Source: Octopus sinensis (lineage: Eukaryota). From it: a stretch of 64,000 nt of DNA. Under the pieces are notes generated by a model, which saw nothing but the letters and a program-made list of their open reading frames with translations, did no database searches and was not told the origin of the DNA. Below, in pieces: positions 10,004 to 40,458 of this stretch (positions are counted from its first letter, which is position 1; each line of letters starts with the position of its first letter). The stretch is taken from the NCBI RefSeq assembly GCF_006345805.1, contig NC_043019.1, forward strand, positions 11,531,360 to 11,595,359. The letters run 5' to 3'. A program made the translations under genes and the position numbers.

Positions 10004-10106
10004 ATGAATCATTCCACTTACCTTTTGTTTCTGCTGCTCACCTTTGTGACAAACACCCAAGCAACATTTGATCCGAAAGTCTGTAAACCAGACACAACAA
10101 ACATTG
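10004..10106 (+). CDS. Gene 1 coding exon 1 (signal peptide)
   Basis: Acceptor ttatttcag at 9998, ATG 10004, donor G|gtaagt. [34 protein letters not shown]. Confidence 0.88.
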
Positions 10107-12384: not shown

Positions 12385-12433
<49 letters not shown>

Positions 12434-14139: not shown

Positions 14140-14175
<36 letters not shown>

Positions 14176-17100
14176 TTGTGTGTCTGTGTTTGTCCCCCTA
14201 GCATTGCTTGACAACCGATGCTGGTGTGTTTATGTCCCCGTTACTAAGCGGTTCGGCAAAAGAGACCGATAGAATAAGTACTGGGCTTACAAAAGAATAA
14301 GTCCCGGAGTCGAGTTGCTCGATTAAAGGCGGTGCTCCAGCATGGCCGCAGTCAAATGACTGAAACAAGTAAAAAAGAGTAAAAAAAAAAGAGAAAGACT
14401 AGTCTGGATACTAAAGGGTTAAGTTTTCAAAATTGGTAACTTTGCCTTTTGATAAATTTAAATCAATGAAAGATATTGATATAAGCAGATGTTTCAATAT
14501 GATTGATTAATTCTATTGAACTTGGTGCTACAGTTCAATAACCGGAACTAGTGGAATGTAATAATAAACTTTAATCATTTAACATTTAATCTGATCATAT
14601 CTGGTCAAAATATTCAGCCCTGTTTTACCTTCAAATTGGCCGGATCCAGCCTCTCACATTTCCCTTGTAATATTATCCTCAAAATTGAAATTACATACGC
14701 ACCATCCGTTCGTGGCCGTTTGCCAGCTCCGTCTGGCACCTGTGCGGGTGGCACGTAAAAAGCAGCCACTACACTCACGGAGTGGTTGGCGTTAGGAAGG
14801 GCATCCAGCCAATACCAGCGCCGCCTTGACTGGCTTCCATGCCGGTGGCACGTTAAAAGCACCAACCGATTGTGGCCACTGCCAGACTCCCCTGGCACCT
14901 GTGCGGGTGGCACGTTAAAAGCACCCACTACACTCACGGAGTGGTTGGCGTTAGGAAGGGCATCCAGCCGTAGAAACACTGCCAGATCTGACTGGGCCTG
15001 ATGCAGCCTTCCGGCTTCACAGACCCCAGTTGAACCGTCCAACCCATGCTAGCATGGAAAACGGACGCTAAATGATGATGATGTCATTGAAATCTCAAAG
15101 CTACAAAGTAATGCATGACTAATTCATATCAATGTGGATAAATAAGAATTACATTTGACAGAGAAATCTGAATGCTAAAGAGTTAAATATTCACAAACCA
15201 ACAGTGGAGCCTGTATGTGGTTGCTCAGCCTGTTAGAAATAGCAGACAAATCTCCTCATACCACACACAAGTCATTGATGGTGGTGGTAGTGATGATGAT
15301 GCTTGTGGTGATTGTCGTGATGACAGTGGTGGAGGTAATGATTGTGTTGGTAATGGTGGTGGTGGTGGTAGTACTTGCGGTAACTGTTGCGGCAGTAGTG
15401 TTAGTGGTTGTGTGGTAGTGATGCTTGTGGTGGTGGTTATCATTGCTGCTTTGTTTGTTTGTTTGTTGAGCGAAGCGGTCTTCTTCTGTAATGGGAGAAG
15501 TCCGAAACATTGTCCTTTGCTATTCATAAGACCCGCAAAAGAGAAAGAGGTCAACCCCCGACACCGAGAGTATCGACGGATGGATGAATGCGTATCCAGG
15601 CTCAGCGGTTGTGTAGGAAGTCGGGGACAAGAAACAGGAAGAAAGAGTGAGAGAAAGTTGGAGCGAAAGAGTACAACAGGGGTCACCACCACCCCCTGCT
15701 GGAGCCTCGTGGAGCTTTAGGTGTTTTCACTCAATAAACACACACAACGCCCGGTCTGGGAATCGAAACCGCGATCCTCCGACCGCGAGTCCGCTGCCCC
15801 ATTGCACCTCCACTATCTTTGCTGCCATGGTGAAGGTGGTTGTCATGGAGGTCATGGTCATCATCAGTGGTGGTGGTCGTGATGGGGATGAAGATGATGA
15901 TGATGTGATCATGGTAACGATAGTGTGAGCATGATTAGAACTATGATGATGATGATGAAATCATTTCATTTGCTTTGCTTATTAATTAATTAAATTTTTT
16001 TTTTTTCCAGATGACAGTTTTCCCAAACTTCACCCTCAATACAGTGTATTCATAGAGGCTAATTACATTTCAAATAAATCCACCGTACATTTCACCGAGT
16101 ACCATGATGCAAATGAAGGAGCCAATGTCATCAAACGAAGCCAACAAGATTCAAAGACAGACATCTACCTCTTCGAGAATACTGGAGAAATGTTTATTGT
16201 GACACCAGATGGTAAACACCTTAAGTTATTGATTAATCATTGAAAAATTCATTCATTCATTTATAATATTTCTTTTTCTTGTTTCAGTCATTGGACTACG
16301 GCCATGCTTGAGCACCACCCTGCAGAGTTTTACTCAAATAAATTACCCCCAGTGTTGATATTTTTTTTTCTATAGAACCTTTAACCCTTTCGTTACCAAC
16401 CTGGCTGAAACCGGCTCTGGCTCTGAGTACAAATGTCTTGTTTTCATTAGTTTTGAATTAAAATCTTCCACCAAACCTTAGTCACAATTTATGTTCCTAA
16501 CACTAGCTTAATGATAATGAAGTTATTTTACTAAATTCTTTGTTATATTTAAAGTAATTGAAAGAAACACGGAGTATCTCAAAATAAATACAGTAAGGAA
16601 AGGGTTAAGGTACAGGGAGATAGACAAACCAACACTAGGTATCAGGCATTGGGGTGGGGACACATACTTTCTCTTGCATTCTCTTACACACACACACATA
16701 TATATAATATATAGTGGGCTCCCACTCAATTTCCATCTACCAAATTCACTCATAAGGCATCAAGTTGGCCCAGGATTATAATAGAAGACATTTGAGCAAG
16801 GTGCCATGCAGTGGCACTGAACCCAAAACCACATGATTGAGAAGCAAGCTACTTAGCCATGCCTATGCCTTAGCCAGATATATACATATGCACCCTAACA
16901 TGGACCCAAACATGGAAATATCCACACAATACTACTCCTTTCCTCCCCAATATAATCCTACACGTATACTCCAAAGAAGTTATCCAAAATATAAAAAATA
17001 CACACACAAATAACTGCAATGCAAAGACATAATGCTAAAAAACATAATGACGTAAAAACATGAGATAATGCTAAAAAAAATAGGTGCAGGAGTGGCTGTG

Positions 17101-19989
17101 TGGTAAGTAGCTTGCTTGCCAACCACATGGTTCCGGGTTCAGTCCCACTGCATGGCATCTTAGGTAAGTGTCTTTTACTACAGCCTCAGGCCAACCAAAG
17201 CCTTGTGAGTTGATTTGGTAAACGGAAACTGAAAGAAGCCCGTTGTGTATATGTATGTATATATATATATAGAGAGAGAGAGGTAGTGGATAGTGATTTT
17301 CTTCACTACTTCAGGGAGTGACACGACCCTGCCTGACACGAGTCCTGGGCTCAGCTGGCTCTGATGACAGTACCTGGTATGGGCCCCTATCCAGGGTTAT
17401 GGAAAGGAGACAACCTTCAAAGAAATCCGGAGTGGAGCCCCGTAGGCGGTTTATTGTTTGACTCGACCCTCTTCTGGCAGCTCCTTCAACCAAGCTGGTG
17501 CTAAATGTAATGCTCTGCACTCCTTTGTTTGTGTGTCTGTGTTTGTCCCCACAACATCGCTTGACAACCGATGCTGGTGTGTTTACGTCCCATAACTTAG
17601 CAGTTCGGCAAAAGAGATTGATAGAATAAGTACTAGGCTTACAAAGAATGAGTCCTGGGGTTGATTTGCTCGACTAAAGGCGGTGCTCCAGCATGGCCAC
17701 AGTCAAATGACTGAAACAAGTAAAAGAGTATTTTCAGCTTTAGTACACTGGTCATGATATTGATATCAACTAAGGTATGGCATTGCTGATTACAATTCTT
17801 ATTTTTATTCAGGGGCATGCAAAACAACCGATTTGTGGAAGAACCCGAATAAGTACTTGTTTGGAGAGGAAATCTCCAATGGACGTTTCTTCTCACTTGC
17901 GGGAGCAGTTGAACTGGCAGAGACAAATTTCTTCAAGGTCAAAGAGAAAACCACAGTCATTGACCGAGGTATGAGTACATCAGTATGGTCAGCATGTCAG
18001 TATTTACCAAGCATGAAAGCAACTGTAAAGACCACTTGGTATTTTGGTAAGTTGGAAAAAATCTTTATATATAAAAGTGAAGTTGTGTGAGTGTCTGTCT
18101 CCTACGATTTAGATTCCTAACTACTCCCACATTTTGCGGTGCAGTTTAACCAAAACCGGGTATCTTATAGTCGTGATTCATATCGAGCCCTTCTGGGTAT
18201 TAGTGCGCATCTATGATGAGTCTACGATTTAAAAAAAAATTTACCATCATTTTCCCCCATTTTAATGCATTTTTTCGCTATTATATAAGGGAAGTAACTC
18301 TCTAAAAATGTCTACGATGAGTCAACGATTTAAAAAAAAATTTACCATCATTTATTTCCCATTTTCAATGCATTTTTTTGCTATTTTTTGGCTATAACTC
18401 TCTAAAAATGCTTATATAGTTATTTCCCTTACAAACCCGAGCAACGCCGGGCGATACTGCTAGTTATATATAAATAAATACACACGTGTGTCTGCCCTTT
18501 TTGTTTCACTGTCCCTATTCTCTTTATATTTACCTTGTACCTTGAGGTTACACCCTCACCAGCTGGGAAAGCCATGTACAAAGGAGTGCAGAAAGGTTCC
18601 TGGCTTTAAGGGTATCTATCATGAAAGGCCTGGTTGGGGGCCTGACATTCCAAGTTCTTTTACAGGGCTTACAAAAACTGAAGGATTGTTGCAATAAGTG
18701 TGTGAATCTAAAAGGGGATTGTGATGAACAAAATCAACTGATCCTCTGTACATTTTTTTTAACCAAAGCCAGGAACCTTTCAGTAAATCCTCATATCTCC
18801 TCTTCAGCAAAATATATGTTCTTGGCCTTTATCATAATTTCACCTCCTTCAGTACTCTACCACACTTAGCTGAGGAGTTTTGTTTTGTCAGTTCCACAAA
18901 AAAAAAAAAAGGAACCCACACGCTCTGGAAAGTGGTTGGCATTAGGAAGGACATTCAGCTGTAAAAATTATGCCAAAGCAGAAAATGGGAGCCCAACACA
19001 GTCATTTGGCTTGTGGGTTCCTGATGAACTACCCAAACCATACCAGCATGGTAAATAAGGTCCTACAGACATGGTTCAAGAAACACCAAGCTGACCTGCC
19101 CAAGATGCGGTCAGAATGACAAAACCATTCTGCACACACTCGTGCAATGTCCAAATATTTCAGACCTGTGGGCCTATGTCGAATGGCTGCTGTCACGTAT
19201 GGGATGGGTCTGGTTGTCAACCGAGTGTGTGGTGTGTATACACACAGTCTTTTTGTATTGCAGATCATTCCTCTCTCCTGATCCCCTTCCTATTGGCATC
19301 TGTCCCTCATTCTTACCATTGTCCCTGGCCATCACCCCACACCAATCTTTGTACATCATTCACTACATTCACCCCTTATATACCTCTGACAACCTCTGTC
19401 CCTATTTTCAGCACGTAAAAGCACCCACTACACTCTCGGAGTGGTTGGCGTTAGGAAGGGCATCCAGCTGTAGAAACTCTGCCAGATCAAGATTGGAGCC
19501 TGGGGCAGCCATCTGGTTCACCAACCCTCAGTCATTTGTCCAACCCATGCTAGCATGGAAAGCAGACATTAAACGATGATGATGAACTCACCCTCTCTCC
19601 CTTCACCCACTCTTCCATACTTCGCTTACTCTTCCTGATTCTTTCCTCTCCACCTTCTCTTCCATTCATTCTTTTGGACACGTTATCTTGAGAATATTCT
19701 GTGGCACATCATCGTCACCATCTATATCTCATTTCTAGCACTCTTCCATCCACTCATATATAACACAGGGGTATCTCTGAATCTCCCCTACACTAAAATA
19801 AACCTGTTCCTCCCATCCTACTCTAACCCAGGGGTTTGCAACCAAGATCAATATGGCCCCTGAGGGTCCATTCCATGCAAGAAAATAGCAAATTGGGGAT
19901 CCACGATAGTATTTTAAGGACCCCTGAAAAAATTTTGCTTGTGAGTGGATTTGGTAGGTGGAAACTGAAAGAAGCCCATCATATATATA

Positions 19990-20025
<36 letters not shown>

Positions 20026-23000
20026 TATGTATATATGTGTGTGTGTGTGTCTTTGTGTCTGTGTTTGTCTCCCCATCACTGCTTGACAACCAATGTTGGA
20101 GTGTTTATGTTGCCATAACTTAGCAGTTTGGCAAAAGAGATCAACAGAATAAGTACCAGGCTTTAAAAAAAAGAGAAGTACTGAGGTTGATACATTCGAT
20201 CAAAAATTCTTCAAAGCAATGCCCCAGCATGTCCGCAGTCTAAAAGAAACGAGTAAAAGATAAAAAAAGATAACAAAAAAAACCAAGTCTGTACAATGCA
20301 ATTATATTTAACACTTCCGTGTAAAATCAACCATAGAAAGACTGATGCTGTGGAAACTATGCCTTATAGACATTGCATGTGAGAACACACACCAGTTATT
20401 ACTTGCGGTCACTGTGTATGCATATGAGATATTTCAGCTAGCAAAAGACCAATGTAAGACTGCTGGTTTTCTATAAACAACCTTGCCCAGACTTGTGCCT
20501 CAGAGGGAGACTTTCTAGGTGCAATCCCATGGTTGTTCATGACTGCAGCGGGTTTTTTATGTCTATTAAGAAATTATATATTTCTTTACTACCAACAAGG
20601 GGCTAAACACAGAGGGGACAAACAAACGGATTAAGTCGATTACATCGACCCCAGTGAGTAACTGGTACTTTATTTATCGACTCCGAAAGGATGAAAGGCA
20701 AAGTTGACCTTGGCGGAATTTGAACTCAGAACATAATGGCAGACGAAATACTGCATTTCGCCTGACGTGCCAACGTTTCTGCCAGCTCGCCGCAGGTCTA
20801 TATACAATTATATACACCTGTATTTCAATTACTGCTATTAGTTTGCTTCTAATTAATATGAAAAAGGGTTTATTTCTTTTCAGCAACAGAAGATTCGGTA
20901 CCTGTGACACCAGTAAGACTTCACATGAAAGGAAAGGATGGTGATGGGAAGGATCTTGAATACCAGTTTGAGTTTTTCCACTATAAGCCTTACATACTGA
21001 CAGAAGAACCAATATTTGAGGTATGAAGTACTTTCTGTTCTTGCCACAATAATAATAAGGGTGGTAGGCATGGCTGTGTGGTAAGAAGCTTGATTCCCAA
21101 CCACATGGTTCCAGGTTCTGTCCCACTGCTGGCACAATCATTATCTACTATGGACCCAAGCCAACCAAATCCTTGTGAATGAATTTGGTAAATAGAATCC
21201 AAAAGAAGTCCATCATGTGTGTGTGTGTGTGCACAAAACAATATCTGTGAAATGCGATTCCCAGGTTATTTCCCTTCATCAGCCGAACAATTATTCTGTG
21301 CTGATGAAGGGAAATAACCCGGAAATCGCGATACACAGATATTGTTTTGAGCTGAGTGGTGGTGCTAGATTCCCTTGTTTGAAAATATAAGGACACAGAT
21401 TGTGTCATATGGCCAGCTGGAGACGATGTGTCTTGGGGCTAAATTACAGCAACATTCATCCTAAACCAGGACTGCCATGTTATGTTGGCAAATAATCTTT
21501 ACTCCTTTTGCCCCTTGTAATATATTTTTTAAAAGGCCATATAGGCCTTAAGCACTTTTCCACCGTTTGTTGAGTGGTATTTTCCAGTCTTTTTGTTTTT
21601 AGGTTTAGTGTTTTGTAAATTGTTTTTGACCAAACCATATACATTCTTATTATATTCCAGTTTTAATCTGTCTTTTTCACTATTATTAATTCTTTTCTCT
21701 TTTCACAGACTCCACGAGGAACCGTATGTAATGGACGAAAACAAACGAAGCCTTTACCAAACTTCCCAGATGTTTTTAGTTGTACAACAGAGATCGTCAA
21801 TGAAGCCAAAAACTCCATCCAATACCAGGAAGTAAGAGATATCTCTGATCCAATGTACAAAAAGAACACATCATGAGACACCACCACCAGTAATAATTTG
21901 ATTTCCCTCTCCTGACCTCCCCTGCTTTGCTCTGGTTGGTTGACTTGGTCAGTTTATACCTCAGGTTTGTCTACACAGGTGCCTTGAACAAGTTTTTTTT
22001 TCTATGATAGCCACAGGATGACCAACGCCTTGTGAATGGATTTAACAAATTGAAACTGAGCAAAAGTTCATTGAAAATACATCTCATTTCTTCTTTGCTC
22101 AATATATTTCCGAGAGGGTTGTGGGGACAGGTCCTCAAATCTGTCTTCCAATGGGGTCCTGTCTGGAGTAACTGTCTCCAATTGATCTGGCTAGATCTGC
22201 AAGTGAGACGACTGAGCTAATGGATGTTAACAAACCATCTTCCTCATGAATATCCTGCCAGTTGGTTTTGCTAACGTACTTACAAGTGAGTGTGTATGCG
22301 TATGTGCATCTATATATGCATGTATATATACATATATGTATGTGTAAGGTGCAGATGGTATTTGTTCACATGAGGAAAAAATAAAACTTTTTATTTTTTG
22401 AGATGTATTCATCAAATTTGGGTCAGTTTGTCTTAATGACATGTTCTATTGATCTCATTTGATGAACCCACTTTTGGCCTTGATGACAGCCTCCAGGTGA
22501 CCCTAAAACTGGCCACAAGCCTTCATCACTGTCTCCCGTTTTAGGCTTCTGAAGGACCTCAGCTCATCCTTCATGTAGCAGCTGAATTTGTTGGTCTCCC
22601 ATTTCAGCACACCCTACACAAAGAAGTCGAGGGAGCTGCAATCAAGTGAATTGGGAGGCCAAATGTCAGGTGCTCTCTGATTGAAGAAATTCTACAACAG
22701 CCAGGCCTGGGTCTTCTAGTTGGTGTGGCAGGGTACAAAGTCTTGCTGCAGCTACCCATTGTCCCAGGGCTTCATCACCTCATTCAAGGAACACATATAC
22801 AGCCATTGGCGTTCAGCCTGAGGCTCTCAGAGAATAAGTGGGGTGGTATGACATCACCTTACTGCTGACAACACCGAAGACTGTGAGTGTTGCTGGAAAT
22901 TTTGTCTGCATGACTCTGAGCACATCCTTGAGTGAGACAGGAAGCCACCAGTTGTTCTGGGAGTTGATCTTCTGGTCTTGGTAGAAATTCTCCTCAGAGA

Positions 23001-26000
23001 AGAACCACGGCATATCTAGCTTCTGTGAATGTTTTAACTTGTTGATCAGCTTCTTAGTGTACTTGATTCACTTTTTCTGCATTGCCTTGGACAGAAATTG
23101 TCCCTTCCTCATCTTGTATGAAAAGTAGTGGATGTCCTCATGGACCACCAGACTGATGAGCTTTTCACCCACACTTTACTCCCATGCAATGGCACACATG
23201 GACTTGAGGGGATGATTTTTATGATTTGGATTTCAGTGATGAATTCCAGCATCATGATGGCATCAGATCATCAATCATGGATTTTCCTCTTTCTTGTCAT
23301 CTCATAGTCAAATCCTGAATCTTCCAGCTCCTTTCTGACCTTTTCCACCATCCTTCTGCTGACACAAATTTCATGGAGGATTCCATGCCTCTTCCGCATC
23401 ATCATCTTTGTTTAGCGTCTGCTTTCCATGCTAGCATGGGTTGGACGGTTTAACTGGGGTCTGGGAAGCCAGAAGGCTGCACCAGGCCCAGTCTGATCTG
23501 GCAATGTTTCTACGGCTGGATGCCCTTCCTAACGCCAACGATGCCCTTCCTAAATTATTATCATTATTATGGCTATGTGGTAATTTCCAATCTTCTGCAA
23601 AAACATGTCTGGCCATGGAGAAATATTACCATACTTGGAAAACAGGTGATGGCTGGCAAGGAAGGGTATCCAGCCAAACCAAATCTGCTTGAACAAAATT
23701 CCTTCCAACCCATGCAAGTATGGAAAAGCATTAAAATGATGATGATCATGATCGTAACAATAATTTAAAAATAAGAAAACACACGACATTACACTGCAAT
23801 CATAAATTTATGACACCATGTGCAATATTAACAATGTATTAACTTTAAATTTGCAGGAAGAATATGATACCATTAACCAACTTGTACGCTTCACTTATAA
23901 ACCAGTATTAGATTCTGAAGACAGTTTTGGGACTGGAAAATTAACTAAAATACATGACTACAAAATTGGTAATTACATCATTTATTATATTATATAATTA
24001 TTATTACATTATTTTCTTTCTTTCACTCATAGCCTAATTTCTCCACATTGTGTGTATGCGTATATATATATATATATGCTAGTGTACCTGTGCTAGTAGG
24101 GTGCTAAGAGAAACCAACTGGCTTCTATGCCAGTAGCATGTAAAAGGGCACCATTCGAGCGTGATCGTTACCAACGTCGCCTTACTGGCACCTGTGATGG
24201 TGGCATGTGTAAAAAGATGCGAGCGAGCTCATTGCTAGTACCGTCAGACTGGCCCCCATGCCGGTGGCACGTAAAAAGCACCTACAACACTCTCAGAGTG
24301 GTTGGCATTAGGAAGGGCATCCAGCTGTAGAAACTCTGCCAGATCAAGATTGGAGCCTAGTGGAGCCATCTGGTTCACCAGCCTTCAGTCAAAATCGTCC
24401 AACCCATGCTAGCATGGAAAGCGGACGTTAAACAATGATGATGATGATGATGATGTATATACTCGTCAAACCAAGTGAAACCGTAGTTGCAGCTGATGCC
24501 AGTGTCACATAACTGGCACCCATGCTGGTGGCATATAAAAGGCACCCATTACACTGCTGGAGTGGTTGGCATTGGGAAGAGCATCCAGCTGTAAAAACCA
24601 TGCCAGACCAGACTGGAACCTGGTGCAGCTCTCCAGTTCACCATTTTCAATCAAACTGTCTAACCCATGCCAGCATGGAAAGCTTCTTTCAGAGTTCTAT
24701 AATTTCCTTCTTCCATCACTATAGACCCGTCACTATAGTCTTCTACTATAGTGTCGGGTTGATCAAAGCCTTGTGAATGGATTTGGTATGTGGAAACTGA
24801 AGCCCATCGTATATATGCACGTGTGTATATATCTACTTGTGTGTATTTTGTGTCTGTCTTAGCCTCCCCCCATCACCATTTGACAACCGGTGTTTGTACA
24901 TTTACATCCCCGTAACTTAACAGCTTGGCAAAAGAGGCTGATAGAATAAGTACTAGGCTTAAGTAATATGTCCAGGAGTAGATTTGTTCAATTAAAACCC
25001 TTCGAGGCGGTGCACCAGCATGACCGCAGACAAATGACTGAAACAAGTAAAAGAATATATATATATAAAACAATCTTTGTATGCCTTTGTGCTTGAGTTT
25101 GTCCCCAATCCTCCACTTGACAACTGGTGTTGGTTTGTGTATGTCCCCATGACTTAGCAGTTCAGAAAGAAAAAAAAAGACAATCAATAGAAAATCATCA
25201 TCATCGTTAATGTCCGCTTTCCATGCTAGCATGGGTTGGACGAATGACTGAAGGCTGGCAAACCAGATGGCTGCACCAGGCTTCAATCTTGATCTGGCAG
25301 AGCTTCTACAGCTGGATGCCCTTCCTAACGCCAACCACTCCGAAAGTGTAGTGGGGGTAAAAGTACTAACATTCCCACTTTCCTCAATAGCATTTACAAC
25401 AGGAACTGGCTGTATCTAAATACTGATATCAAATTATGAACTTAAATCACAGGTAGAATTACCTCTACTGCATGGCTCATTTTTAGTAAAGTTCTAATAA
25501 TATTGATTACTAACAATGGTACAAGGCCACTAATTATGTTAGGGTTCAATCAATTACATTAATTTCTGAACTAATTTTATCAACAATGGAAGGATAAAAG
25601 GTAAAGGTATGATTTGAGTGTAAAGGGACATTGTTAAAATATGTACGAAAATTAAAAAAATAAGTATTAGGGTCAATCTGTTTGATTAAAACTCTTCAAG
25701 GTTGTATTGTAACATAGCCACAGCCTGATTACCGAAAGAAGTAAAAGATAGTATTTTGTGTTCCAGCTTTCACTTTCACTTTATCTCTGATCTTATTTAC
25801 AGATGTTGCATACATTATTGATGATATCCGAGGCAACTGCACGATGCAACCGATATTTGGGAACGATGATGATATCAGAGGTGATCACAATCAGCGCATG
25901 GCCACCGCAAAAGAGATTTTTAAGGTTGATAAGGGTATCTTTACATATGAAGGTGTGGTAAGTATCTGCTGTTAATTTGATCCAATTCTAGATACTCTTT

Positions 26001-28017
26001 AGTGCTTCGTTGTTATTGATGTCATTTGTTTAACCTCAGGTAAAACCTGATCAGGTACACATATCATCAAAGACATTCCAAATTACAGTGGTGCTGAAAG
26101 GTTCCTGTCTTTAAGGGTATCGCAAAAGGCCCGGTTGGAGGCTCAACATTCCAAGTTCTTTAACAGGGCTGAGTAAATGTGAAGGACCAGTGCAATAAGT
26201 GTGTGAATCTGAGAGGAGAATATGTTGAATAAAATCATAATTAACTGATCCTCCTGTATTTTTTTTTTTACCCAAAGCCAGGGACTTTTCAGCTGCCCTT
26301 CATAGCAAACCTAGGACTACATTACCAAATAATCTTCCTTCCTCTTTCTCTTTAGTTTTACTATTTCCTTTTCTAAGATAATAGTTTGTGGGTGAGAAAG
26401 AAAAGTGTACTCCCCATCACCTATACCTATTTCTTTATTACCCACAAGGGGCTAAACATAGAGGGGACAAACAAGGACAGACAAACAGATTAAGTCGATT
26501 ATATTGACCCCAGTGCGTAACTGGTACTTATTTAATCAACCCCGAAAGGATGAAAGGCAAAGTCGACCTCGGCGGAATTTGAACTCACAACGTAACGGCA
26601 GACGAAATACCTATTTCTTTATTACCCACAAGGGGCTAAACATAGAGGGGACAAACAAGGACAGACATAGGTATTAAGTCGATTATATTGATCCCAGTGC
26701 GTAACCGGTACTTATTTAATCAACCCCGAAAGGATAAAAGGCAAAGTCGACCTCGGCGGAATTTGAACTCACAACGTAACGGCAGACGAAATACCGCTAA
26801 GCATTTCACCCGGCGCGCTAACGTTTCTGCCAGCTATACCGTCCATCGTCTACTCTATTGATTTCCAGTCTCTGCTCTTCACCAACTCACTCTATCTTCA
26901 AGTGGTTTTGTATTCTAGATTAAGAGATGGGTTGGTATAAAAGAGGCAGATAAGCCAAAGGAGATACTAGTTAAATTTGGGGTATCAGAGCTAAATTCTT
27001 TGAAGCTATGCGACTTGCCAGTTCATTATGTGCCATGCTAGCTCTTATATTCAGAGCCAGCTTGGCTCTCCAATTATGACAATGAGTCTTCCAGTTGATA
27101 CGATCAACTGAAGAAACTGCTTGCAAAACTATTACGCAAGTGGCTGAGCACTCCACAATCACACATGCCTTTTACATAGTTCTCCGGGAGATTCTGCATG
27201 AAACAGAATGCAACAAGGATAACCCTTTGAATTTACAGGTACAACTGAAGGAAATAGTAAAACTAGAGAGAAAAAATTATAAAAGCCATTATGATTTTTA
27301 CATTTTTATTTATTTTTGTTAATTTCCATAATTTTTGTAAGAATATTGAATTATATTTTTGTTGTTCTTTGTCTGCTTTCAGCAAAGTATACGGGGTTAT
27401 GAGTGTGATCTTTGGGTTGCTCACATCGACGCCTACCCAGCCTTTCCACTGATGACAGGGTCAATTATTGAATGGTATTTTACAACAGTGAGTTCTAACA
27501 ACTGCTCCACGTTTTGTATCTTAGTTTGCATGCATGTGTGTGTGTATGTATGTGTGTGTGTGTGTATGGGGCATACACATATCTTTTATCTTTTGTTTGT
27601 CATTCGACTGCAGCCATGCTAGGCCACCACCTTGGAAAATTTTTTGTTTAATCAATTGAACCCAGTACTGTTTCTGTCGGTCTCTTTTGCCAAACATCTA
27701 AGTTACAGGGACATAAACATACCAACATTGGTTGTCCAGTTGTGGTGGGACAAATGAAAAACACAGACACACACAATATATATATATACCTATTTCTTTA
27801 TTACCCACAAGGGGCTAAACACAGAGGGGACAAACAAGGACAGACATAGGTATTAAGTCGATTACATCGACCCCAGTGCGTAACTGGTACTTAATTTATC
27901 GACCCCGAAAGGATGAAAGGCAAAGTCGACCTCAGCGGAATTTGAACTCACGACGTAATGCAGACGAAATACCGCTAAGCATTTCGCCCGGCGTGCTAAC
28001 GTTTCTGCTAGCTCGCC

Positions 28018-28051
<34 letters not shown>

Positions 28052-31000
28052 GTGCTGGTGGCACGTAAAAAGCACCAACCGATCGTCGCTGTTGCCAGCC
28101 TCCCCCGGCACCTATGCTGGTGGCACGTAAAAAGCACCCACTACACTCATGGAGTGGTTGGTGTTAGGAAGGGCATCCAGCTGTAGAAACGCTGCCAGAT
28201 CAAGATTGGAGCCTGGTGCAGCCTCCTGGCTTCCCAGACCCCGGTCGAACCGTCCAACCCATGCTAGTATGGAAAACGGACATTAAACGATGATGATGAT
28301 ATATATTAGCTTAAAAGCCACACTCTGTGAAGACATTTAAGATAGCTTTTGTGGAGAGCTAATTGGGCCTGCTAAATAGCACAACTGTAATATGTCTATA
28401 ATGACTATATACCCTGGTGGTGCCTGACCAGAGGTTAAAGAGAGATGAGAATTAATTCTGTAGTGCAATCATTCAATCATTCCAGTCTCAAGTTGAATTC
28501 CAACTGTTGGCCAATTTGTCCCAAAGTTCTTATCTCACCATAAAAGAAATGAAGTGAATGTCATTTATCTTCCCCTTCATCTCAAACATCATCTGACAAA
28601 TGCCACCAAGATGGTGTCAATCAGCCAAGCTTTACCTGCTAGAAATAGCAACCCAAAAGTTTTTAAATCAGATCCCAATGCTGGATGTTCAAGAACCAAA
28701 TTGAAGGGCAGCTTTTCATCCTAGGATCATCCTGATTCCAAAAAAGATATAATACAACTATGTAGAGTAAATGTAGGCTGAGATACAGGGGACCCAGACA
28801 GACAGACAGAATTTCACTTTATATATATATATATATATATATATACTAGGAAACATACCCGTCCTTTGGATAGTTTAAGTTGCTTTGGTGGTATTTTCTT
28901 CACCAAATAATTGAATTTATCACTTCAGCAAAAGAGATTAGTACAATAAATACTAGACTTTCAAAACAAAATGTACTGGGGTTAATTCATTCGACTAAAA
29001 CCCTTCAAGGTAGTGCTCTAGCATGGCTCCAGTCCAACAATTGAAATAAAATATAAAATGGTTGAAGTAAAAGAAAGTTAATATTAATTCTAAATTGTCT
29101 AATGTTATATTTTTTGGGTTTTTTTTTTTTTTTTTTGCATATAACCATCTCAGCGCCAGTGGTCTTATGGAAAAGCTGTCCATGGAGTACCAAAGTTGAT
29201 GACACAGACTGACCTTAGTGTAAGTACTTTGCAGTTAATTTAGCTTAACTCTTTGAAATTAATTATTTGTGTTGAGACAACGTTGAATGGATTTAGACAA
29301 CCAAAGTAACAACAGACTGGAGAAGTAAATATCTAGACCGTTCCTGCTTAATATAAATCCATTTTCCTTCATTAACCGTGGTTATATTTGGCAAAGAGAT
29401 TTCAGTAGTCAAGACTGATTTCATTTTACTTCTGATGTGTGTGTTGTGTATTGTGTGTATACTTTGTGAGTGAGTGTGATTGGTCATGTTTTAAATTGCA
29501 CAGCAAGGGAGAGAGAAGGGGTAAAAACGTGATACAAAAGGACAGTTAAAATTTAGAGATGCAGGACGAATGCACACACTAGGCCTAGTGGCAGGCAATG
29601 AGTAAAAGCACATCATATATACACACATACACTGAGAGAAAAAAATTAAGGAAGTCGAGAAGTATATGATATCTACTTTTCCATGCTTGCCTGGGTCAGC
29701 TGGAATTTATTGAGGCAGGTTTTCTACATCAGATGCCCTTCTTGTCACCAATCTTCACCTGTTTCCAAGTAGGTAATATTTCCCCATGACCAAATGTGTT
29801 TTCTATGGAAGATTGGAAACAAACAACAATGCTTGTATGACAGTGAAACTAGTTTACAACCATCACATGATGTCGACACAAACGTGCACATACATACACG
29901 TATGTACAACAGGTTTCTTTCAGTTTCCATCAGCCAAATCCACTTACAAGGCTTTGGTTAGCCCAGGACTACAGTAGAAGACACTTACCCAAAGTGCTGT
30001 AAAGTGGGGTTGAACTCAAGACCACATGGTTGGGAAGTAAGCATCTTACACAAACACATATATAAATGCAATGTTATTACTAGTTCAAATACACCAATGG
30101 CACGTTTGAACTTGCAAACAAGCCATTCGTTGTGTTTTGTTATGGAGAAAGTTTTTTGCTGTCAACAGAGAAATTTTCTCCATAACAAAACACAGTGAAT
30201 GACTTGTTTACAGGTTCGAATGTGCCACTGGCATATTCAAAATTGTTTGTTCCTTCTCAAGCCACGCCTGGCTCATAGGGCTGGTTTCCCGGTTTCCTTG
30301 GCGTATAGGTTCCCCACCCGGATGGGACGCCCGTCCGTCGCAGGTGAGCTGCAAGATGCATGAGGAAAGAGTGAGAGAAAGTTGTGGCGAAAGAGTCAGC
30401 AGAAGTTTCGCCATTACCTTCTGCTGGAGCTGCGTGGAGCTTAGGTGTTTCGCTCATAAACACACACATCGCCCGGTCTGAGATTCGAACCCGCGATCCC
30501 TCGACCGCGAGTCTGCTGCTCTAACCACTAGGCCATGTGCCTCCACTCGAACTAGTAATAACATTGCGTTTATACAGATCACTGCTTAGCACTCTCATCC
30601 AACACATACAAAGATACATACACACAAATGTATGAGTATTTTCTTGTAAACTGCCATTTCATTCCTTTTGTTTTTTTGGGGTTTTTTTTAAACAGTCGCA
30701 TGAAGTTGAGGAAAAGAATATATATAACTTCAGAGAGACAGAACCAGATATTCTATTATTTGATGTCACAGCATGTTTTGAATTCAGAGATAAATACAAG
30801 TTTACATTCACAGTACCAGGTAGGTTGCATACAATTAACTCTTTTCTCTGCTTGAGACTGCCTTTAATTCAATTATACAAAATTGCTGTTTTGAAATGAT
30901 CTAAATTAAAACTGCCCACCAAAGTTTCATGTTAATTTATGTTCCAAACCATCAGTTATTTTAATTAATTTTTCATTAATTTCAAAATTAATTGGTAATG

Positions 31001-32641: not shown

Positions 32642-32686
<45 letters not shown>

Positions 32687-35477
32687 ATGTTTGTGTGTCT
32701 GTTTGTCCCCCCCAACATCGTTTGACAACCGATGCTGGTGTGTTTACGTCCCCGTAACTTAGTGTTTCGGCAAGAGATACCGATAGAATAAGTACTAGGC
32801 TTACAAAGAATAAGCCCCGGGTCGATTTGCTCGACTAAAGGCGGTGCTCCAGCATGGCCGCAGTCAAATGACTGAAACAAGTAAAAGAGTATATATAAAA
32901 TAAAACCAGAGTCGGTTTAACATTAATTCAGTTAAACAGTTCCTACTAAGATCAATGGTAATCAAGCAAGCAGAACTGTTCATATTTCTTCTCTAAATCC
33001 AAATACGTACAGAAACCCAAGTCTAATAGTCAAGACAAATCTGCTTCCACCTTCTCAAAACCTTCATGAAAATTAAAACATGAAAATTGTGCATAATCTC
33101 CATGCTTTGATGTCTTTTTCTTCAAGCCAAACACACCCAATTAATTGAAAGGCACCTGAAAAGTTTTAAACGAGGGATCGTCTATGCAATTATTGATAAT
33201 ATAGAGATTTCTCCTATGAGAATCAACCAAATAAATGTGAGTTTTTTCTTTAAGCCATTCTTAATTTATGCATCAGTTATTAATTATTTTTTTTAATCGT
33301 AATTTTTACATCCATCTTCTCAGGTTTGTAGGAGTTCATCCATTCATTCATGTATGTATCTTCCTTGTGTCTGAAGTCAAATTGACCTTTCATCCCTTTG
33401 TGGTCAATAAAGCACTGGGGGGTTGATGTAATCAGTTAACCAGACTCCCACTAAAATTGCCAGCTTTGCACCAAAATTTGAAGGAATTATTAAGGAGTGG
33501 CTGTGTGGTAAGTAGCTTGCTAACCAGCCACATGGTTCCGTGTTCAGTCCCACTGCGTGGCATCTTGGGCAAGTGTCTTCTGCTATAGCCCCGGGCCGAC
33601 CAATGCCTTGTGAGTGGATTTGGTAGACGGAAACTGAAAGAAGCCTGTCGTATATATGTATATATATATAAGTGTGTGTGTATATGTTTGTGTGTCTGTG
33701 TTTGTCTCCCTAGCATTGCTTGACAACCGATGCTGGTGTGCTTACGTCCCCGTCACTTAGCGGTTCGGCAAAAGAGACCGATAGAATAAGTACTGGGCTT
33801 ACAAAGAATAAGTCCCGGGGTCGATTTGCTCGACTAAAGGCGGTGCTCCAGCATGGCCGCAGTCAAATGACTGAAACAAGTAAAAGAGTAAAGAGTAAAG
33901 AGTATCAGAAGCCATGGGAGCCAATGCTTGGTATTGCATCAGAGTGCCAAACAAAATGCTTATCTGTATTTCATCTGCTGCTACACCTGAGTTCAAATTC
34001 CGCCGAGGTCGACTTTGCCTTTCACCCTTTCAGGGTCGATAAATTAAGTACCAGTGAAACACTGGGGTCAATGTAATCAACTAGTTTCCTCCCCCAAAAT
34101 TTCAGACCTTGTGACTATAGTAGAATTATTATTATTATTATCATTATTGCTGTTATGTACTTCTAACATAAAATAATTACATTCTATACCATCAGCCAGT
34201 CAGTTGAAACTGACATTCAAAAGGGTCAGAGAAAATAGCCCTGTCAATTATATTTATTTTACTGCTTTTATCACGGTCAAAGGTCATCATCATTATACCA
34301 CCAGCTTAGTGGGAAGTTTTTTTTTTATTTGGTAGTCATAGCAGTAGTGTTGCTGTGTAAACAAAATAAATGGAAACATGTTAGACACATCCATACTGCA
34401 CATTATAAACATGTTATATACATACACACAGACATTAACAAGTTATATACATACATACAAGAACATGCTATACACACACATACAGTAACAGGTACATATA
34501 TACATATTAATTTCAAATTTTGGCACAAGGCCAGCAGTTTCAGGGAAGAGGCCAAGTCAGTCACATCAACCCCCCCAGTGCTCAACTGGTACCTACTCTA
34601 TAAAACCAGACAAAATACCACTAAGCAATTATTAACCCAGTTGAAACTGACTCTGGCTCTGTAATACAAATGTCTAGTTTTCATAAGTTTTGAATTAAAA
34701 TCTTCCACCAAACCTTTGTCACAATTAATGTTCCTAATACTAGCTTAATGATAACTAAGTTATTTTACTAAATCCTTTGTTAGATTTTAAATTAATTGAA
34801 AGAAACACAGAGTATCTCAACAGAAATAAGGTAACAAAAAGGTTAAAGTCACCATGATATTTTTAACCCTTTTATTACCAACCCAGCTGAAACCGGCTCT
34901 GGCTCTACAAATGTCTTGTTTTCATAAGTTTTGAATTAAAATCTTCCACCAAACCTTTGTCACAATTAATGTTCCTAACACTAGCTTAATGATAACTATG
35001 TTATTTTACTAAATCTTTTGTTAGATTTTAAGTTAATTGAAAGAAGCAGGGAGCATCTCAAAATAAATACAGTAAGGAAAGGGTTAAAGAAAACAGAGAA
35101 TATACATAGAACAATAGGAGTGGCTGTGTGGTAAGTAGCTTGCTTACCAACCACATGGTTCTGGGTTCAGTCCCACTGCGTGGCACCTTGGGCAAGTGTC
35201 TTCTACTATAGCCTCGGGCTGACCAAAGCCTTGTGAGTGGATTTGGTAGATGGAAACTGAAAAAAGCCCGTCGTATATATGTGTGTGTGTTTGTGTGTCT
35301 GTGTTTGTCCCCCCAACATCGCTTGACAACTGATGCTGGTGTCTTTATATCCCCGTAACTTAGCGGTTGCGCAAAAGAGGCCGATAGAATAAGTACTAGG
35401 CTTACAAAGAATAAGTCCTGGGGTCGATTTGCTCGACTAAAGGCGGTGCTCCAGCATGGCCACAGTCAAATGACTGA

Positions 35478-35541
<64 letters not shown>

Positions 35542-37319
35542 AGTGTGTCTTTGTGTCTGTATTTGTCTCCCCACCACCACTTGACAACTGATGTTGGTGT
35601 GTTTGCACGAATTCACTTTTACAATAGAAAACTACCGTTTCATGATGTAAATTTTTTTGATGTCATGATTTTTAAATATATATTCTTGAATAATTTTGCA
35701 GGTTGAGTTTGAAAAAGATAAAATCTTAGCATCATTTAAGATCCGTCATGATTTTTAAATATATATTCTTGAATAATTTTGCAGGTTGAGTTTGAAAAAG
35801 ATAAAATCTTAGCATCATTTGAGATTCATGACAAGGTAACAGTTCCTAACAGTGGCACCCTTACAAAGAAGCAAATAAGCTTGAAGAAAGCTGTGGATGG
35901 ACTGCGAAGCATTTTTGATAAAGGTGCTTTCACAGTCCCATTTAAATATGGGGACCAACAGGTAAGTACCTTCATACACACCTCTACACAGTAATGCACT
36001 GTCCTTGTATTGTGCTTCAAAGCCTCCAATGAATTTCAGCACCTGACACACCTTTTGACCAAAGAAATCGGATCACTGCTCTTCAATGCACATTCCTGGT
36101 GGAGTGGCCACGTTTACACTATAAAGCCAGAAAGAAAAATAGCATCATCATCATCATCGTTTAATGTCCGTTTTCCATGCTAGCATGGGTTGGACGGTTC
36201 GACCGGGCTCTGGGAAGCCAGGAGGCTGCACCAGGCTCCAGTCTAATCTGGCAGTGTTTCTACAGCTGGATGCCCTTCCTAACGCCAACCACTCCGTGAG
36301 TGTAGTGGGTACTTTTTACATGCCACCAACACAGGTGCCAGGGGAGGCTGGCAATGGCCACGATCAGTTAGTGCTTTTTACGTGCCACCAGTACGGAAGC
36401 CAGTCAAGGCGGCACTAGATTCAGCCACGTTCAGATGATGCTTTTTACATGCCACCGGGACGGGTATCACAACTACAATTTCCATTTGATTTTTATTTTG
36501 ATGTTGATGTACTCGACTCAGTAGGTCTCTTCAAGCACAGCAGGTTGCCCTACGATCCAAGGTAATCACAGCAGGCCGTCCTGCGATCCAAGGTACTTTG
36601 GATGGGCCGGGGCTGCTATGTGAAGCTGGTGCAGGAAATAGCCATGTGCTGCTTCTCAAACAATTGCCTTGGCAATCACTCACTTCCGAGGTTTGTTTCC
36701 TCACGTTTAATTTTTGCATCATTATGTTCATCTACAATTTGCATTCTACCCAGTTAATTACTAACCCGTCTTAATTTAATTTAACAATCATAGTCTTGCC
36801 TTTTTTTTTTTTTTTTTTTGCATAGGAGTGGATGTGTGGTAAGTAGCTTGTTTACCAACCACATGGTTCCGGGTTCAGTCCCACTGCGTGGCACCTTGGG
36901 CAAGTGTCTTCTACTATAGCCTCGGGCCGACCAAAGCCTTGTGAGTGGATTTGGTAGACGGAAACTGAAAGAAGCCCGTCATATATATATATATATGTGT
37001 GTTTGTGTTTGTCCCCCCAACATCGCTTGACAACCGATGCTGGTGTATTTATGTCCCCGTCACTTAGCGGTTCGGCAAAAGAGACCGATAGAATAAGTAC
37101 TGGGCTTACAAAGAATAAGTCCCGGGGTCAAGTTGCTCAATTAAAGGCAGTGCACCAGCATGGCCGCAGTCAAAATGACTGAAACAAGTAAAAAAAAAAC
37201 AATTAAAAAAAATATCAATGAATTTTAATATTTTTCATTTTCAGATAATCATGATTGATGCTGATAGCAACTCCTTAATTATGGAAGAAGTAAAAGGAAC
37301 ACACAAATCTAACAACTAA
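10004..37319 (+). CDS. Uncharacterised secreted protein, 573 aa, 13 coding exons: signal peptide + 2 tandem ependymin/LolA-like domains + C-terminal domain
   Basis: join(10004-10106,16011-16211,17813-18046,20884-21020,21709-21831,23857-23968,25803-25957,27383-27487,29154-29219,30696-30819,33127-33236,35785-35961,37245-37319) = 1722 nt. All introns are GT-AG, phases are consistent and there is no internal stop. Hydrophobic N-terminus [20 protein letters not shown]. Repeated motifs: [13 protein letters not shown] / [13 protein letters not shown]; EYHD / EEYD; [11 protein letters not shown] / [11 protein letters not shown]; F..P..C. The family call is from motif memory, not a search. Confidence 0.9.
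11393..11716. mobile_element. hAT (Charlie-like) MITE
   Basis: CAGGGGTTCTCAACC start, degenerate GGTTGATAACC end; flanks GTCTAGAC / AGCTAGAC (NTCTAGAN preference). Confidence 0.6.
12904..12917. promoter_or_regulatory. Perfect palindromic RFX X-box motif
   Basis: GTTTCCATGGAAAC in non-repeat sequence of intron 1. Confidence 0.4.
13008..13805. mobile_element. Inverted pair of SINE A: 13008-13237 (-) and 13402-13805 (+)
   Basis: TSDs ttataggctcatacct (16 bp) and tatatctggacaaa (14 bp). Confidence 0.85.
16011..16211 (+). CDS. Gene 1 exon 2
   Basis: ttttttccag|...G|gtaaac, phase 1-1. [18 protein letters not shown]...GEMFIVTPD. Confidence 0.9.
16385..16604. mobile_element. piggyBac-type MITE family 1
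   Basis: TTAA|CCCTTT...AAAGGG|TTAA. Confidence 0.7.
17813..18046 (+). CDS. Gene 1 exon 3
   Basis: ttttattcag|...G|gtaagt, phase 1-1. GACKTTDLW...[12 protein letters not shown]...TTWYF. Confidence 0.88.
18062..18463 (+). mobile_element. Non-autonomous Helitron copy 1
   Basis: A|TC 5' end, CCCG..CGGG subterminal hairpin, CTAG|T 3' end, no TSD. Confidence 0.8.
20884..21020 (+). CDS. Gene 1 exon 4
   Basis: ttcttttcag|...|gtatga, phase 1-0. [16 protein letters not shown]...EFFHYKP...EPIFE. Confidence 0.9.
21295..21339 (+). ncRNA. Candidate type I minimal hammerhead ribozyme (Penelope-like element type)
   Basis: Stem I TCTGTG/CACAGA; core CTGATGA (21301-07); stem II GGG-AAATAA-CCC; GAAA (21322-25); palindromic stem III ATCGCGAT; NUH=AUA, with cleavage predicted after 21333. 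Confidence 0.6.
21709..21831 (+). CDS. Gene 1 exon 5
   Basis: ttttcacag|...|gtaaga, phase 0-0. [32 protein letters not shown]. Confidence 0.9.
22330..23400 (-). pseudogene. Tc1/mariner maT-family (DD37D) transposase fossil, antisense in intron 5
   Basis: Minus-strand translation [52 protein letters not shown]-37aa-[18 protein letters not shown]-stop (22455), with in-frame stops and frameshifts. Confidence 0.85.
23857..23968 (+). CDS. Gene 1 exon 6
   Basis: atttgcag|...G|gtaatt, phase 0-1. [16 protein letters not shown]...KIHDYKI. Confidence 0.9.
25803..25957 (+). CDS. Gene 1 exon 7
   Basis: ttatttacag|...|gtaagt, phase 1-0. [13 protein letters not shown]...FTYEGV. Confidence 0.9.
26084..26304. 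mobile_element. Tc1/mariner-type ~220-bp MITE (also 18577-18795; partial ~46990-47140)
   Basis: TIR-like GCTGAAAGGTTCCTG..CAGGGACTTTTCAGC; internal sequence shared among copies. Confidence 0.6.
26422..26835 (-). mobile_element. SINE A with duplicated tail (other copies 5623-5838, 8608-8970, 20580-20795, 27787-28020, 45730-46222, 59940-60570)
   Basis: High similarity to the family A consensus seen across the window. Confidence 0.8.
27383..27487 (+). CDS. Gene 1 exon 8
   Basis: ctgctttcag|...|gtgagt, phase 0-0. [12 protein letters not shown]...IEWYFTT. Confidence 0.9.
29154..29219 (+). CDS. Gene 1 exon 9
   Basis: Poly-T tract, catctcag|...|gtaagt, phase 0-0. [22 protein letters not shown]. 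Confidence 0.85.
30084..30240. repeat. ~157-bp imperfect palindrome
   Basis: Perfect 20-bp core arms 30131-30150 and 30175-30194; outer arms differ almost only by transitions. Confidence 0.8.
30243..30546 (-). mobile_element. tRNA-derived SINE family C (also 46640-46950, 15470-15798)
   Basis: Head GGCCTAGTGGTTAGAGC..GGTTCGAATC; CpG-rich body shared by 3 copies. Confidence 0.8.
30696..30819 (+). CDS. Gene 1 exon 10
   Basis: tttttaaacag|...G|gtaggt, phase 0-1. [12 protein letters not shown]...FDVTACF...FTVP. Confidence 0.88.
33127..33236 (+). CDS. Gene 1 exon 11
   Basis: ttttcttcaag|...|gtgagt, phase 1-0. KHTQLIE...[10 protein letters not shown]. Confidence 0.85.
34632..35083. mobile_element. 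Two adjacent piggyBac-type family 1 MITEs (partial + complete 34867-35083)
   Basis: Same internal sequence as 16385-16604; TTAA flanks on the second copy. Confidence 0.65.
35662..35826 (+). repeat. 83-bp tandem duplication spanning the exon 12 acceptor
   Basis: gtcatgattttt..gcag|gttgag..gcatcattt starting at 35662 and 35745. Confidence 0.9.
35785..35961 (+). CDS. Gene 1 exon 12
   Basis: aattttgcag|...CAG|gtaagt, phase 0-0. [16 protein letters not shown]...KYGDQQ. A duplicate acceptor lies at 35701. Confidence 0.85.
37245..37319 (+). CDS. Gene 1 terminal coding exon 13
   Basis: tttcattttcag|[27 protein letters not shown], followed by AATAAA signals. Confidence 0.8.
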   Translation: MIMIDADSNSLIMEEVKGTHKSNN

Positions 37320-37700: not shown

Positions 37701-37783
37701 AATAAACATGTTCCTTTTGTAATGATATAATTATTTTTGTGTTTATTATTGTATGACGCTGTCTCAATTTTCAGCAAAATAAA
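37701..37783 (+). terminator. Candidate polyadenylation signals of gene 1
   Basis: AATAAA at 37701-37706 and 37778-37783, with T/GT-rich sequence downstream. Confidence 0.5.
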
Positions 37784-39999: not shown

Positions 40000-40458
40000 T
40001 TGCTAAGATCAACTTTATCTTTGATTTCTCTGCATTGAACTAGCAGAATTATAAGAAATAATTCAATCAATTATATTTAATTTCTTTTGCAAAATCAAAC
40101 CTTCTTTAAAAGAAAGGGACAGGGCTTAATAAAATGAATTTGATTTCCAGCAGTATGTTGTGTCCTTCAGCAAGACACTTTATTTCACATTGCTCCTGTC
40201 CACTCAGCTGACAAAATGAGTTGTACTTGTAGTTCAAAGGGACAGCCTTTTTCACACTCTGAGACACATTGAGTCTCTCTGAGAACTATGTTAGGGGTGT
40301 GAATGTCTGTGGAGTGCTCAGCCACTTGCATGCTAATTTCATGAGCAGGCTGTTCTGTTGATTGGATCAACTGGAACACTTGTCATTGTAATTGACAGAG
40401 TGACAGGGGGTCAATTACATTGACCCCAGTCTTTGGCTGGTACTTATTTTATTGACCC

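Follow-up and report, generated by a model that had tools for sequence, protein, structure and literature searches.

Ependymin-related proteins (EPDRs) are widespread and functionally obscure. They are single-domain proteins of about 200-213 amino acids (aa) with a signal peptide, a four-cysteine EPDR profile has been described, and no EPDRs have been reported from ecdysozoans (PMC6280359). The pocket of EPDR1 binds apolar ligands, namely fatty acids and gangliosides (PMC6363788, PMC6608618). Here we analyse a window of 64,000 nucleotides from Octopus sinensis (contig NC_043019.1; all coordinates below are positions in this window) and the gene LOC115223611 within it, which is already annotated, as uncharacterised, and is intact and conserved. 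Its product combines two tandem EPDR/LolA-like domains with a C-terminal DUF7959 domain, and it ends without a membrane anchor. That this absence appears to be the exception in an otherwise transmembrane-anchored family is our main addition to the first-pass annotation, an earlier reading of the same DNA from its letters.

Like EPDR1/MERP (Pfam PF00811; structures 6E8N, 6E7O, 6JL9, 6JLA and 6JLD) and the protein EPD-BCP1 (8I34), which are secreted, N-glycosylated and contain cysteines, the octopus protein has a secretory signal and cysteines, with glycosylation represented by sequons only. EPDRs and the octopus model share the same antiparallel beta-sheet fold, the deep pocket of the former being predicted in the latter. 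Four cysteines of domain 2 follow the N-to-C order of the four-cysteine EPDR profile (PMC6280359). EPDRs have three ultra-conserved cysteines; in the octopus protein, cysteines lie near the N-terminus, in the middle and in the later part of each domain (C27/C104/C163 and C232/C316/C363/C439), as numbered in the octopus protein and not from an alignment with EPDRs. The differences are considerable. Instead of one domain of about 200 aa, the octopus protein has 573 aa, with two such domains in tandem followed by DUF7959; it matches neither Pfam PF00811 nor, by hidden Markov model (HMM), the EPDR1 sequences; and its relatives are transmembrane-anchored and include a centipede protein, whereas no EPDRs were found in ecdysozoans (PMC6280359). 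LOC115223611 is EPDR-like in fold but stands outside the ependymin-related family by the Pfam and domain-count tests.

The bacterial proteins LolA/LolB, LprG, RseB and VioE belong to the same fold class, with weaker Foldseek matches than the EPDRs (E 7e-5 to 4e-4 for LolA/LolB against the octopus model). RseB, too, is composed of several domains, one of which is LolA-like and binds lipids. In contrast to LolA, the octopus gene is spliced and eukaryotic, without sequence similarity to LolA and without Lol pathway partners; it resembles the bacterial protein and is not a member of that family.

The nearest relatives are uncharacterised animal proteins of a family catalogued in Pfam under PF25898 and PF25899. 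Full-length homologues include Magallana gigas K1R990, Haliotis rubra LOC124289197 and Patella vulgata LOC126816707 (E 1e-72 to 1e-60, 28-34 % identity). The family shows the same three-domain ectodomain and all the invariant residues of the octopus protein, with two whole modules (1250-1440 aa) or additional SRCR domains in some of the relatives. A conserved 'GYSxGxMAGL' transmembrane segment closes about 90 % of the full-length proteins, whereas the octopod ones stop short of this motif.

Gene model and domain organisation

The first-pass annotation had proposed a complete spliced reading frame of 573 aa at 10004-37319. When open stretches that looked coding were roughly joined, they led to an NCBI protein of 573 aa, which was then mapped with exact splicing. 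The frame is that of the 'uncharacterized protein LOC115223611' of O. sinensis (P0001, XP_029650127.1), with 100 % identity over 573 aa, and it runs on the + strand from the ATG at 10004 to the TAA at 37317-37319, so that coordinates and length were right. The exon count has to be corrected: 12 had been implied and the mapping gives 13. Every intron is of the GT...AG type, and most acceptors have a good polypyrimidine tract. The features are as follows.

Exon 1, 10004..10106, + strand: aa 1-34; start codon, signal peptide aa 1-20 (10004-10063), first conserved cysteine C27; donor TTG/gtaagtat.
Exon 2, 16011..16211, + strand: aa 35-101; LolA/EPDR-like domain 1 begins, with a 15-residue motif and the NKS sequon (spliced mapping, hhalign).
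Exon 3, 17813..18046, + strand: aa 102-179; middle of domain 1, with invariant C104 and C163, R153-G154 and the 'WYF' motif.
Exon 4, 20884..21020, + strand: aa 180-225; end of domain 1.
Exon 5, 21709..21831, + strand: aa 226-266; LolA/EPDR-like domain 2 (probably Pfam LolA_2nd_metazoa) begins, with C232 and a 10-residue motif (precomputed Pfam, hhalign).
Exon 6, 23857..23968, + strand: aa 267-303; domain 2.
Exon 7, 25803..25957, + strand: aa 304-355; domain 2, with the NCT sequon and invariant C316, Y352 and G354.
Exon 8, 27383..27487, + strand: aa 356-390; domain 2, 'RGYECDLW ... EWYFTT'.
Exon 9, 29154..29219, + strand: aa 391-412; domain 2 loop, the lowest-confidence region of the model.
Exon 10, 30696..30819, + strand: aa 413-453; end of domain 2, with invariant C439.
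Exon 11, 33127..33236, + strand: aa 454-490; C-terminal alpha/beta domain (probably Pfam DUF7959) begins, with invariant R485.
Exon 12, 35785..35961, + strand: aa 491-549; DUF7959 domain.
Exon 13, 37245..37319, + strand: aa 550-573 and TAA at 37317-37319; final DUF7959 strand and hydrophilic tail.
AATAAA, 37701..37706, + strand: candidate polyadenylation signal 382 nucleotides 3' of the stop codon, from sequence only.

Exon borders coincide with domain borders, domain 1 being encoded by exons 2-4, domain 2 by exons 5-10 and the C-terminal domain by exons 11-13. The earlier allotment of repeat 1 (about aa 35-225) to three exons and repeat 2 (aa 226-453) to six was therefore right, and the C-terminal domain of about 120 aa that had been claimed corresponds to aa 454-573, Pfam DUF7959. 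An 83-bp tandem duplication at 35666-35831 has produced a second copy of the exon 12 acceptor together with its first ~50 nucleotides; reading from this decoy acceptor (35701/35702) meets a TAA after 18 codons. Octopus bimaculoides has one copy of this stretch, so the duplication is specific to O. sinensis.

The N-terminal 20 residues comprise a hydrophobic core and small residues at -3 and -1 (a T-x-A cleavage motif), followed by TF, features that bear out the signal peptide claimed earlier; residues 3-16 form a helix in the AlphaFold2 model. The eight cysteines (27, 104, 163, 232, 250, 316, 363 and 439) and the sequons NKS(56) and NCT(315) are all present as reported, and a further sequon, NHS(2), is irrelevant as it lies within the signal peptide. 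Beyond the signal peptide the highest 19-residue Kyte-Doolittle mean is 0.93, so that the protein has no transmembrane segment, and the hydrophilic 11-residue tail accordingly provides neither a transmembrane helix nor a glycosylphosphatidylinositol (GPI)-type signal. For the annotated product, hydropathy thus agrees with the hydrophilic ending described before, which had been said to lack a transmembrane or GPI-like tail.

The same 573-aa product is annotated in Octopus vulgaris and O. bimaculoides, the orthologue of the latter maps to its own locus in 13 exons, and all exons were recovered from the Argonauta hians genome. Between O. sinensis and O. bimaculoides, the Nei-Gojobori method gives a synonymous rate (dS) of 0.129, a nonsynonymous rate (dN) of 0.050 and a dN/dS of 0.39 overall, with 0.35 for domain 1, 0.31 for domain 2 and 0.59 for the C-terminal domain. 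Judged by these rates, the gene is under purifying selection, if rather relaxed. The overall ratio, together with an identity of 20-34 % to non-octopod relatives, indicates a secreted protein that appears to be fast-evolving but maintained.

Family, duplication and fold

A phmmer search run exhaustively against 1.84 billion cluster representatives returned 368 homologues at E<=1e-3, of which 213 reach E<=1e-10 and 74 reach E<=1e-30, with E-values down to 1e-83, well outside what chance would produce. A word-index homology search with a 50-sequence family alignment (A1) found four proteins and nothing beyond the phmmer set. Most members measure 600-690 aa, and some reach 1250-1440 aa with two whole modules. 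The hosts include chiton, abalone, limpet, oyster, clam, snails, an annelid, a nemertean, a centipede and amphioxus. Nine residues are invariant in the family, and the octopus protein keeps all of them (C104, C163, C232, D300, C316, Y352, G354, C439 and R485). Member names are 'uncharacterized', 'hypothetical' or evidently transferred, as with DMBT1 from an added SRCR domain. Searches of the literature with locus names, UniProt ids and Pfam ids found no paper, and neither these nor the naming yielded a characterised orthologue, in line with the uncharacterised status given to the protein at first reading.

Three members appear as fused or merged forms, P0029 (Owenia fusiformis, 1400 aa), P0065 (Branchiostoma, 788 aa) and P0104 (Mya arenaria, 878 aa); an ionotropic glutamate receptor ligand-binding UniRef name, an SRCR domain and an 'Apple domain' name occur among them, one each. 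Such forms reflect either genuine shuffling of domains among cell-surface proteins or gene models that were merged.

Precomputed Pfam labels assign PF25898 (LolA_2nd_metazoa) and PF25899 (DUF7959) to the protein, both unmarked (E<=1e-5). Since the entry P0002 has neither the C-terminal domain nor PF25899, we infer PF25899 to be the C-terminal domain and PF25898 to be domain 2. Unlike these labels, a local hmmscan of P0001, P0002 and P0003 against Pfam-A returned neither model at E<=1-10, a conflict probably due to the two models missing from the local library. SHOCT_2 and BRICHOS, which came up when the octopus, O. bimaculoides and Argonauta proteins were scanned locally, were discarded as noise. 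On the phmmer matches and Pfam labels, LOC115223611 is a member of a wide bilaterian LolA_2nd_metazoa/DUF7959 family, catalogued by Pfam but unstudied.

The two repeats are only marginally alike by direct BLASTP (E 0.11; common motif RG...W...WYF.T). When the alignment A1 was cut into two halves and these were compared as profiles by hhalign, domain 1 and domain 2 matched with 99.7 % probability and E 2.9e-26 over 175 columns, and by this comparison the repeats are unambiguously homologous. Paired motifs comprise P.LP.qF, E.YD, a central cysteine (C104/C316), Y.G..VRGI..D.W and WYF...W....PV, so that the two diverged repeats with parallel motifs recognised at first reading are upheld. The tandem architecture is found in chiton, gastropods, bivalves, annelid, nemertean, centipede and amphioxus. 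As it is common to molluscs and these other lineages, the duplication is, judged by its distribution, ancient, as had been suggested. Intron positions differ between the repeats, with one pair about two codons apart after the WYF motif (179/180 versus 390/391), and therefore give the duplication no independent support.

AlphaFold2, run on the alignment A1, produced a model with a mean predicted local distance difference test score (pLDDT) of 85.1 and a predicted TM-score (pTM) of 0.77. It contains two parallel runs, each of about six strands, a short helix and then five or six strands, followed by a C-terminal domain of alpha-alpha-beta-beta-alpha-beta-beta(-beta) order. A Foldseek search of the PDB, with a single alignment for each target, yielded 50 matches at E<=1e-3. 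The top 15 are all ependymin-related (E 3e-7 to 5e-6, probability 1.00, target TM-score 0.51-0.66) and consist of sponge EPD-BCP1 (8i34) and frog, mouse and human EPDR1 (6jl9, 6jla, 6e8n, 6e7o and 6jld); at the head of the list, 8i34, 6jl9, 6jla, 6e8n and 6e7o score E 3e-7 to 1e-6 and target TM-score 0.55-0.66. They are followed by RseB, VioE, LolA, LprG, LolB and a Thermus LolA-like protein (E 7e-6 to 4e-4). The structural similarity to EPDR and LolA proteins, whose absence would have spoken against the original proposal, is thus present in the model. Given that the two domains are homologous at 99.7 %, the predicted EPDR/LolA fold extends to both. At the sequence level, Pfam Ependymin matches fall below threshold in 10 of the 50 relatives, the best of them in domain 2 (5.7e-5, 23.7 bits against a cut-off of 32.3).

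Modelled alone, the C-terminal domain reaches a pLDDT of 90.3. A fold search with it found no significant solved analogue; the best matches were the juxtamembrane domains of Trop2 and EpCAM (E 0.3-0.9), a resemblance between model and structures that we treat as a lead and not as a result.

The C-terminal end in octopods

Family members typically close with the consensus '...GYSxGxMAGLxxxMxxxGxxxGxxxxxxxxK'. A hydrophobic segment lies within the last 110 residues in 111 of the 124 representatives of at least 550 aa (~90 %), so the family is normally a type I membrane protein with a single transmembrane helix; the 13 full-length exceptions are mostly truncated-looking models. The octopus protein aligns to its relatives until about residue 568 and stops ~10 residues short of 'GYSxGxMAGL'. 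An identical 11-residue tail is annotated in O. vulgaris and O. bimaculoides, and the last exon of Argonauta hians reads MMIDSDGSSLTIEEVKGQHHHS followed by a stop, with 'EEVKGQHHHS' as its end. The claim that the protein has no membrane anchor is thereby confirmed for the annotated product, whose ending is conserved across three species of Octopus and in Argonauta.

Within exon 13 lies a possible in-frame donor, GAA/GTAAAA (37290/37291), whose Argonauta counterpart, GAG/GTCAAG, is poorly kept. The residues past it are conserved as protein (VKGTH in Octopus, VKGQH in Argonauta), with a stop a few codons on. Searches of the window for an exon encoding the anchor, the finding that would have contradicted an anchor-free product, returned nothing significant downstream, whether by tblastn with the C-termini of relatives or by a hydropathy scan of every downstream + strand frame. 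An HMM of the family C-terminus likewise had no significant match among 4,376 ORF fragments from the window and the Argonauta locus, and the 8.4 kb past the Argonauta stop hold no transmembrane-like exon. A fragment at 48747-48830 was rejected as an anchor exon, its match being non-significant. In O. bimaculoides the flank compared was 10 kb, which falls short of the region syntenic to 55.6 kb.

Because of the shared tail, the Argonauta stop, the poorly kept donor and the null searches for an anchor exon, an annotation artefact seems an unlikely cause of the octopod ending. We consider it quite likely, from these comparisons, that the octopod lineage has lost the anchor.

Possible role, rival readings and surroundings

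We propose that a cleavable signal peptide takes the LOC115223611 product into the secretory pathway. The mature protein consists of two ependymin/LolA-fold beta-sheet domains (aa about 35-225 and 226-453) and the 120-aa alpha/beta DUF7959 domain. In the normal form of the family, the same ectodomain sits on the 'GYSxGxMAGL' juxtamembrane motif and a single transmembrane helix; the octopod coding sequence ends just ahead of this motif, and the entire ectodomain would be released in soluble form. Proteins of this fold hold hydrophobic ligands, which are lipoprotein acyl chains in LolA/LolB, glycolipids in LprG, lipids in RseB and carotenoids in sponge EPD-BCP1 (8i34). By analogy with these characterised proteins, each domain most likely forms a hydrophobic cavity for a lipid or other apolar ligand, and the octopus protein, with two such sites, may carry or scavenge hydrophobic molecules outside the cell. 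Anchored relatives may do likewise at the cell surface, where DUF7959 could serve as a juxtamembrane stalk or interaction module. What the analysis shows is the gene model, its secretory signal and lack of a transmembrane segment, the internal duplication, the fold and the family; the predicted cavities, the ligands and the carrier role are extrapolated from the fold, as are the tissues suggested at first reading. For LOC115223611, the reading best suggested by analogy is that it carries hydrophobic ligands in soluble form, and on balance we favour the whole proposal of a secreted three-domain octopod protein that has lost its anchor and carries hydrophobic ligands at two sites.

This proposal has to be weighed against three others. 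The protein might be anchored after all through an unannotated downstream transmembrane exon, with the 573-aa product a minor or mispredicted isoform. Such an arrangement would suit the transmembrane helix of 90 % of full-length relatives and the possible donor within exon 13, and the + strand frame at 55646-55771 (FYTPVNDMFGIPIVFALVGLLLLVKSS and stop; 55670-55771, IKEEFIIFYTPVNDMFGIPIVFALVGLLLLVKSS and stop), preceded by an AG of matching phase, is the best transmembrane-profile match in the window. That match, however, is non-significant (E 0.6, 7.8 bits, with a minus-strand fragment scoring 7.3 bits), its polypyrimidine tract is poor, and it lies 18 kb downstream, past an opposite-strand gene; the frame is either a chance occurrence or a relic of a lost anchor exon. 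The residues after the donor and the nearby stop are conserved between Octopus and Argonauta although the donor itself is poorly kept, the Argonauta flank lacks any such exon, and three independent annotations agree on the end, which makes an anchored isoform improbable.

Alternatively, the ectodomain could be an adhesion or receptor module working through protein-protein contacts, with the octopod soluble form a secreted ligand or decoy. That family members are by default type I proteins of the cell surface, with a short cytoplasmic tail, fits this alternative, as do the fusion of some members to SRCR or other receptor-type modules, the best (non-significant) leads for the C-terminal domain, to EpCAM and Trop2, and a history, in at least part of the literature, of discussing ependymins as cell-contact glycoproteins. 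Against it, all significant solved matches bind, carry or convert hydrophobic small molecules or lipids, and no protein-interaction motif was found in LOC115223611; we regard it as unlikely, if somewhat less so than an anchored isoform. That the gene has become a weakly constrained relic which, having lost its anchor, is on its way to losing its function seems very improbable to us. The dN/dS of 0.39 (0.59 in the C-terminal domain), the lack of transcript-derived copies in the protein collection, an identity of just 20-34 % to every non-octopod relative and the decoy acceptor that the O. sinensis-specific duplication places ahead of exon 12 could be read this way. Yet neither the frame of 573 codons nor any of the 24 splice sites is disrupted, the frame is also intact in O. 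bimaculoides and O. vulgaris, every exon is present in Argonauta, the family-invariant cysteines, glycine and arginine are all kept, and dN/dS is clearly below 1.

Several observations weigh against the secreted-carrier proposal itself. Foldseek, with one alignment per target, does not distinguish which domain was matched, and the fold assignment reaches the second domain only by way of homology between the two. No Pfam Ependymin match at E<=1 was obtained for the octopus protein, and a search of PDB sequences with the protein and the family profile found no EPDR match and only transmembrane-helix noise, so that its link to EPDRs is a structural one. A carrier function is not dictated by the fold, since an enzyme, VioE, and a sensor, RseB, are among the relatives that share it. 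The 90 % cluster of P0001 is made up of genome-annotation entries, without transcript-assembly copies, so the 3' end rests on annotation and conservation. A dN/dS of 0.39 is, moreover, rather relaxed.

The surroundings of the gene are low-GC animal DNA (about 0.29-0.45 GC) in which microsatellites and repeats resembling short interspersed nuclear elements (SINEs) abound. The SINE-like repeat, whose translation includes '...CRWHVKST...', has many intron copies on both strands (for example 11880-12160, 14690-15000, 24270-24600 and 44800-45400), and long (TA)n and (TATG)n-type microsatellites yield 'IYIYIY' pseudo-ORFs; together they account for most mechanical ORFs in the region. A minus-strand ORF at 44790-45590, coding-looking at about 45400-45590, begins with 'MDSSDFHVKDTPASMSSMDMVTKDSIIQQAQELIDEVNDKRKHDELFSEYRKQLEKHV' and then enters the SINE-like repeat; it has nothing significant in Pfam. 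In O. bimaculoides a 155-aa minus-strand gene is called 5.6 kb past the stop of the orthologue, and an opposite-strand neighbour follows LOC115223611 within about 6-8 kb; the minus-strand ORF is probably the first exon of this tail-to-tail neighbour. Two further ORFs, 40433-40789 (+) and 58067-58357 (-), are presumably C-terminal pieces of ORF2 proteins of retrotransposons without long terminal repeats, which they resemble; the former has no Pfam match. The window from 1 to 64000 contains no tRNA genes by ARAGORN, no Rfam family at gathering threshold and no second copy or tandem paralogue of LOC115223611.

Much of this was already at hand: the gene was annotated, its domains are in Pfam, and the fold is hinted at by UniProt, where O. 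bimaculoides fragments are titled 'LolA-like domain-containing protein', so that a specialist would hardly be surprised. The family nevertheless represents a second, uncharacterised architecture of the EPDR fold, with tandem domains, DUF7959 and a membrane anchor, from molluscs to amphioxus. More tentatively, and with less confidence than we give the octopod proposal, its members may be unrecognised bilaterian-wide cell-surface receptors or transfer proteins for lipids or pigments, with the octopod form a secreted two-site shuttle. If so, eukaryotes would have their first tandem-LolA lipid carrier, and its natural soluble ectodomain would make the family biochemically tractable. As a naturally anchor-free member, the octopod protein would offer a convenient route to the function of a whole unstudied family.

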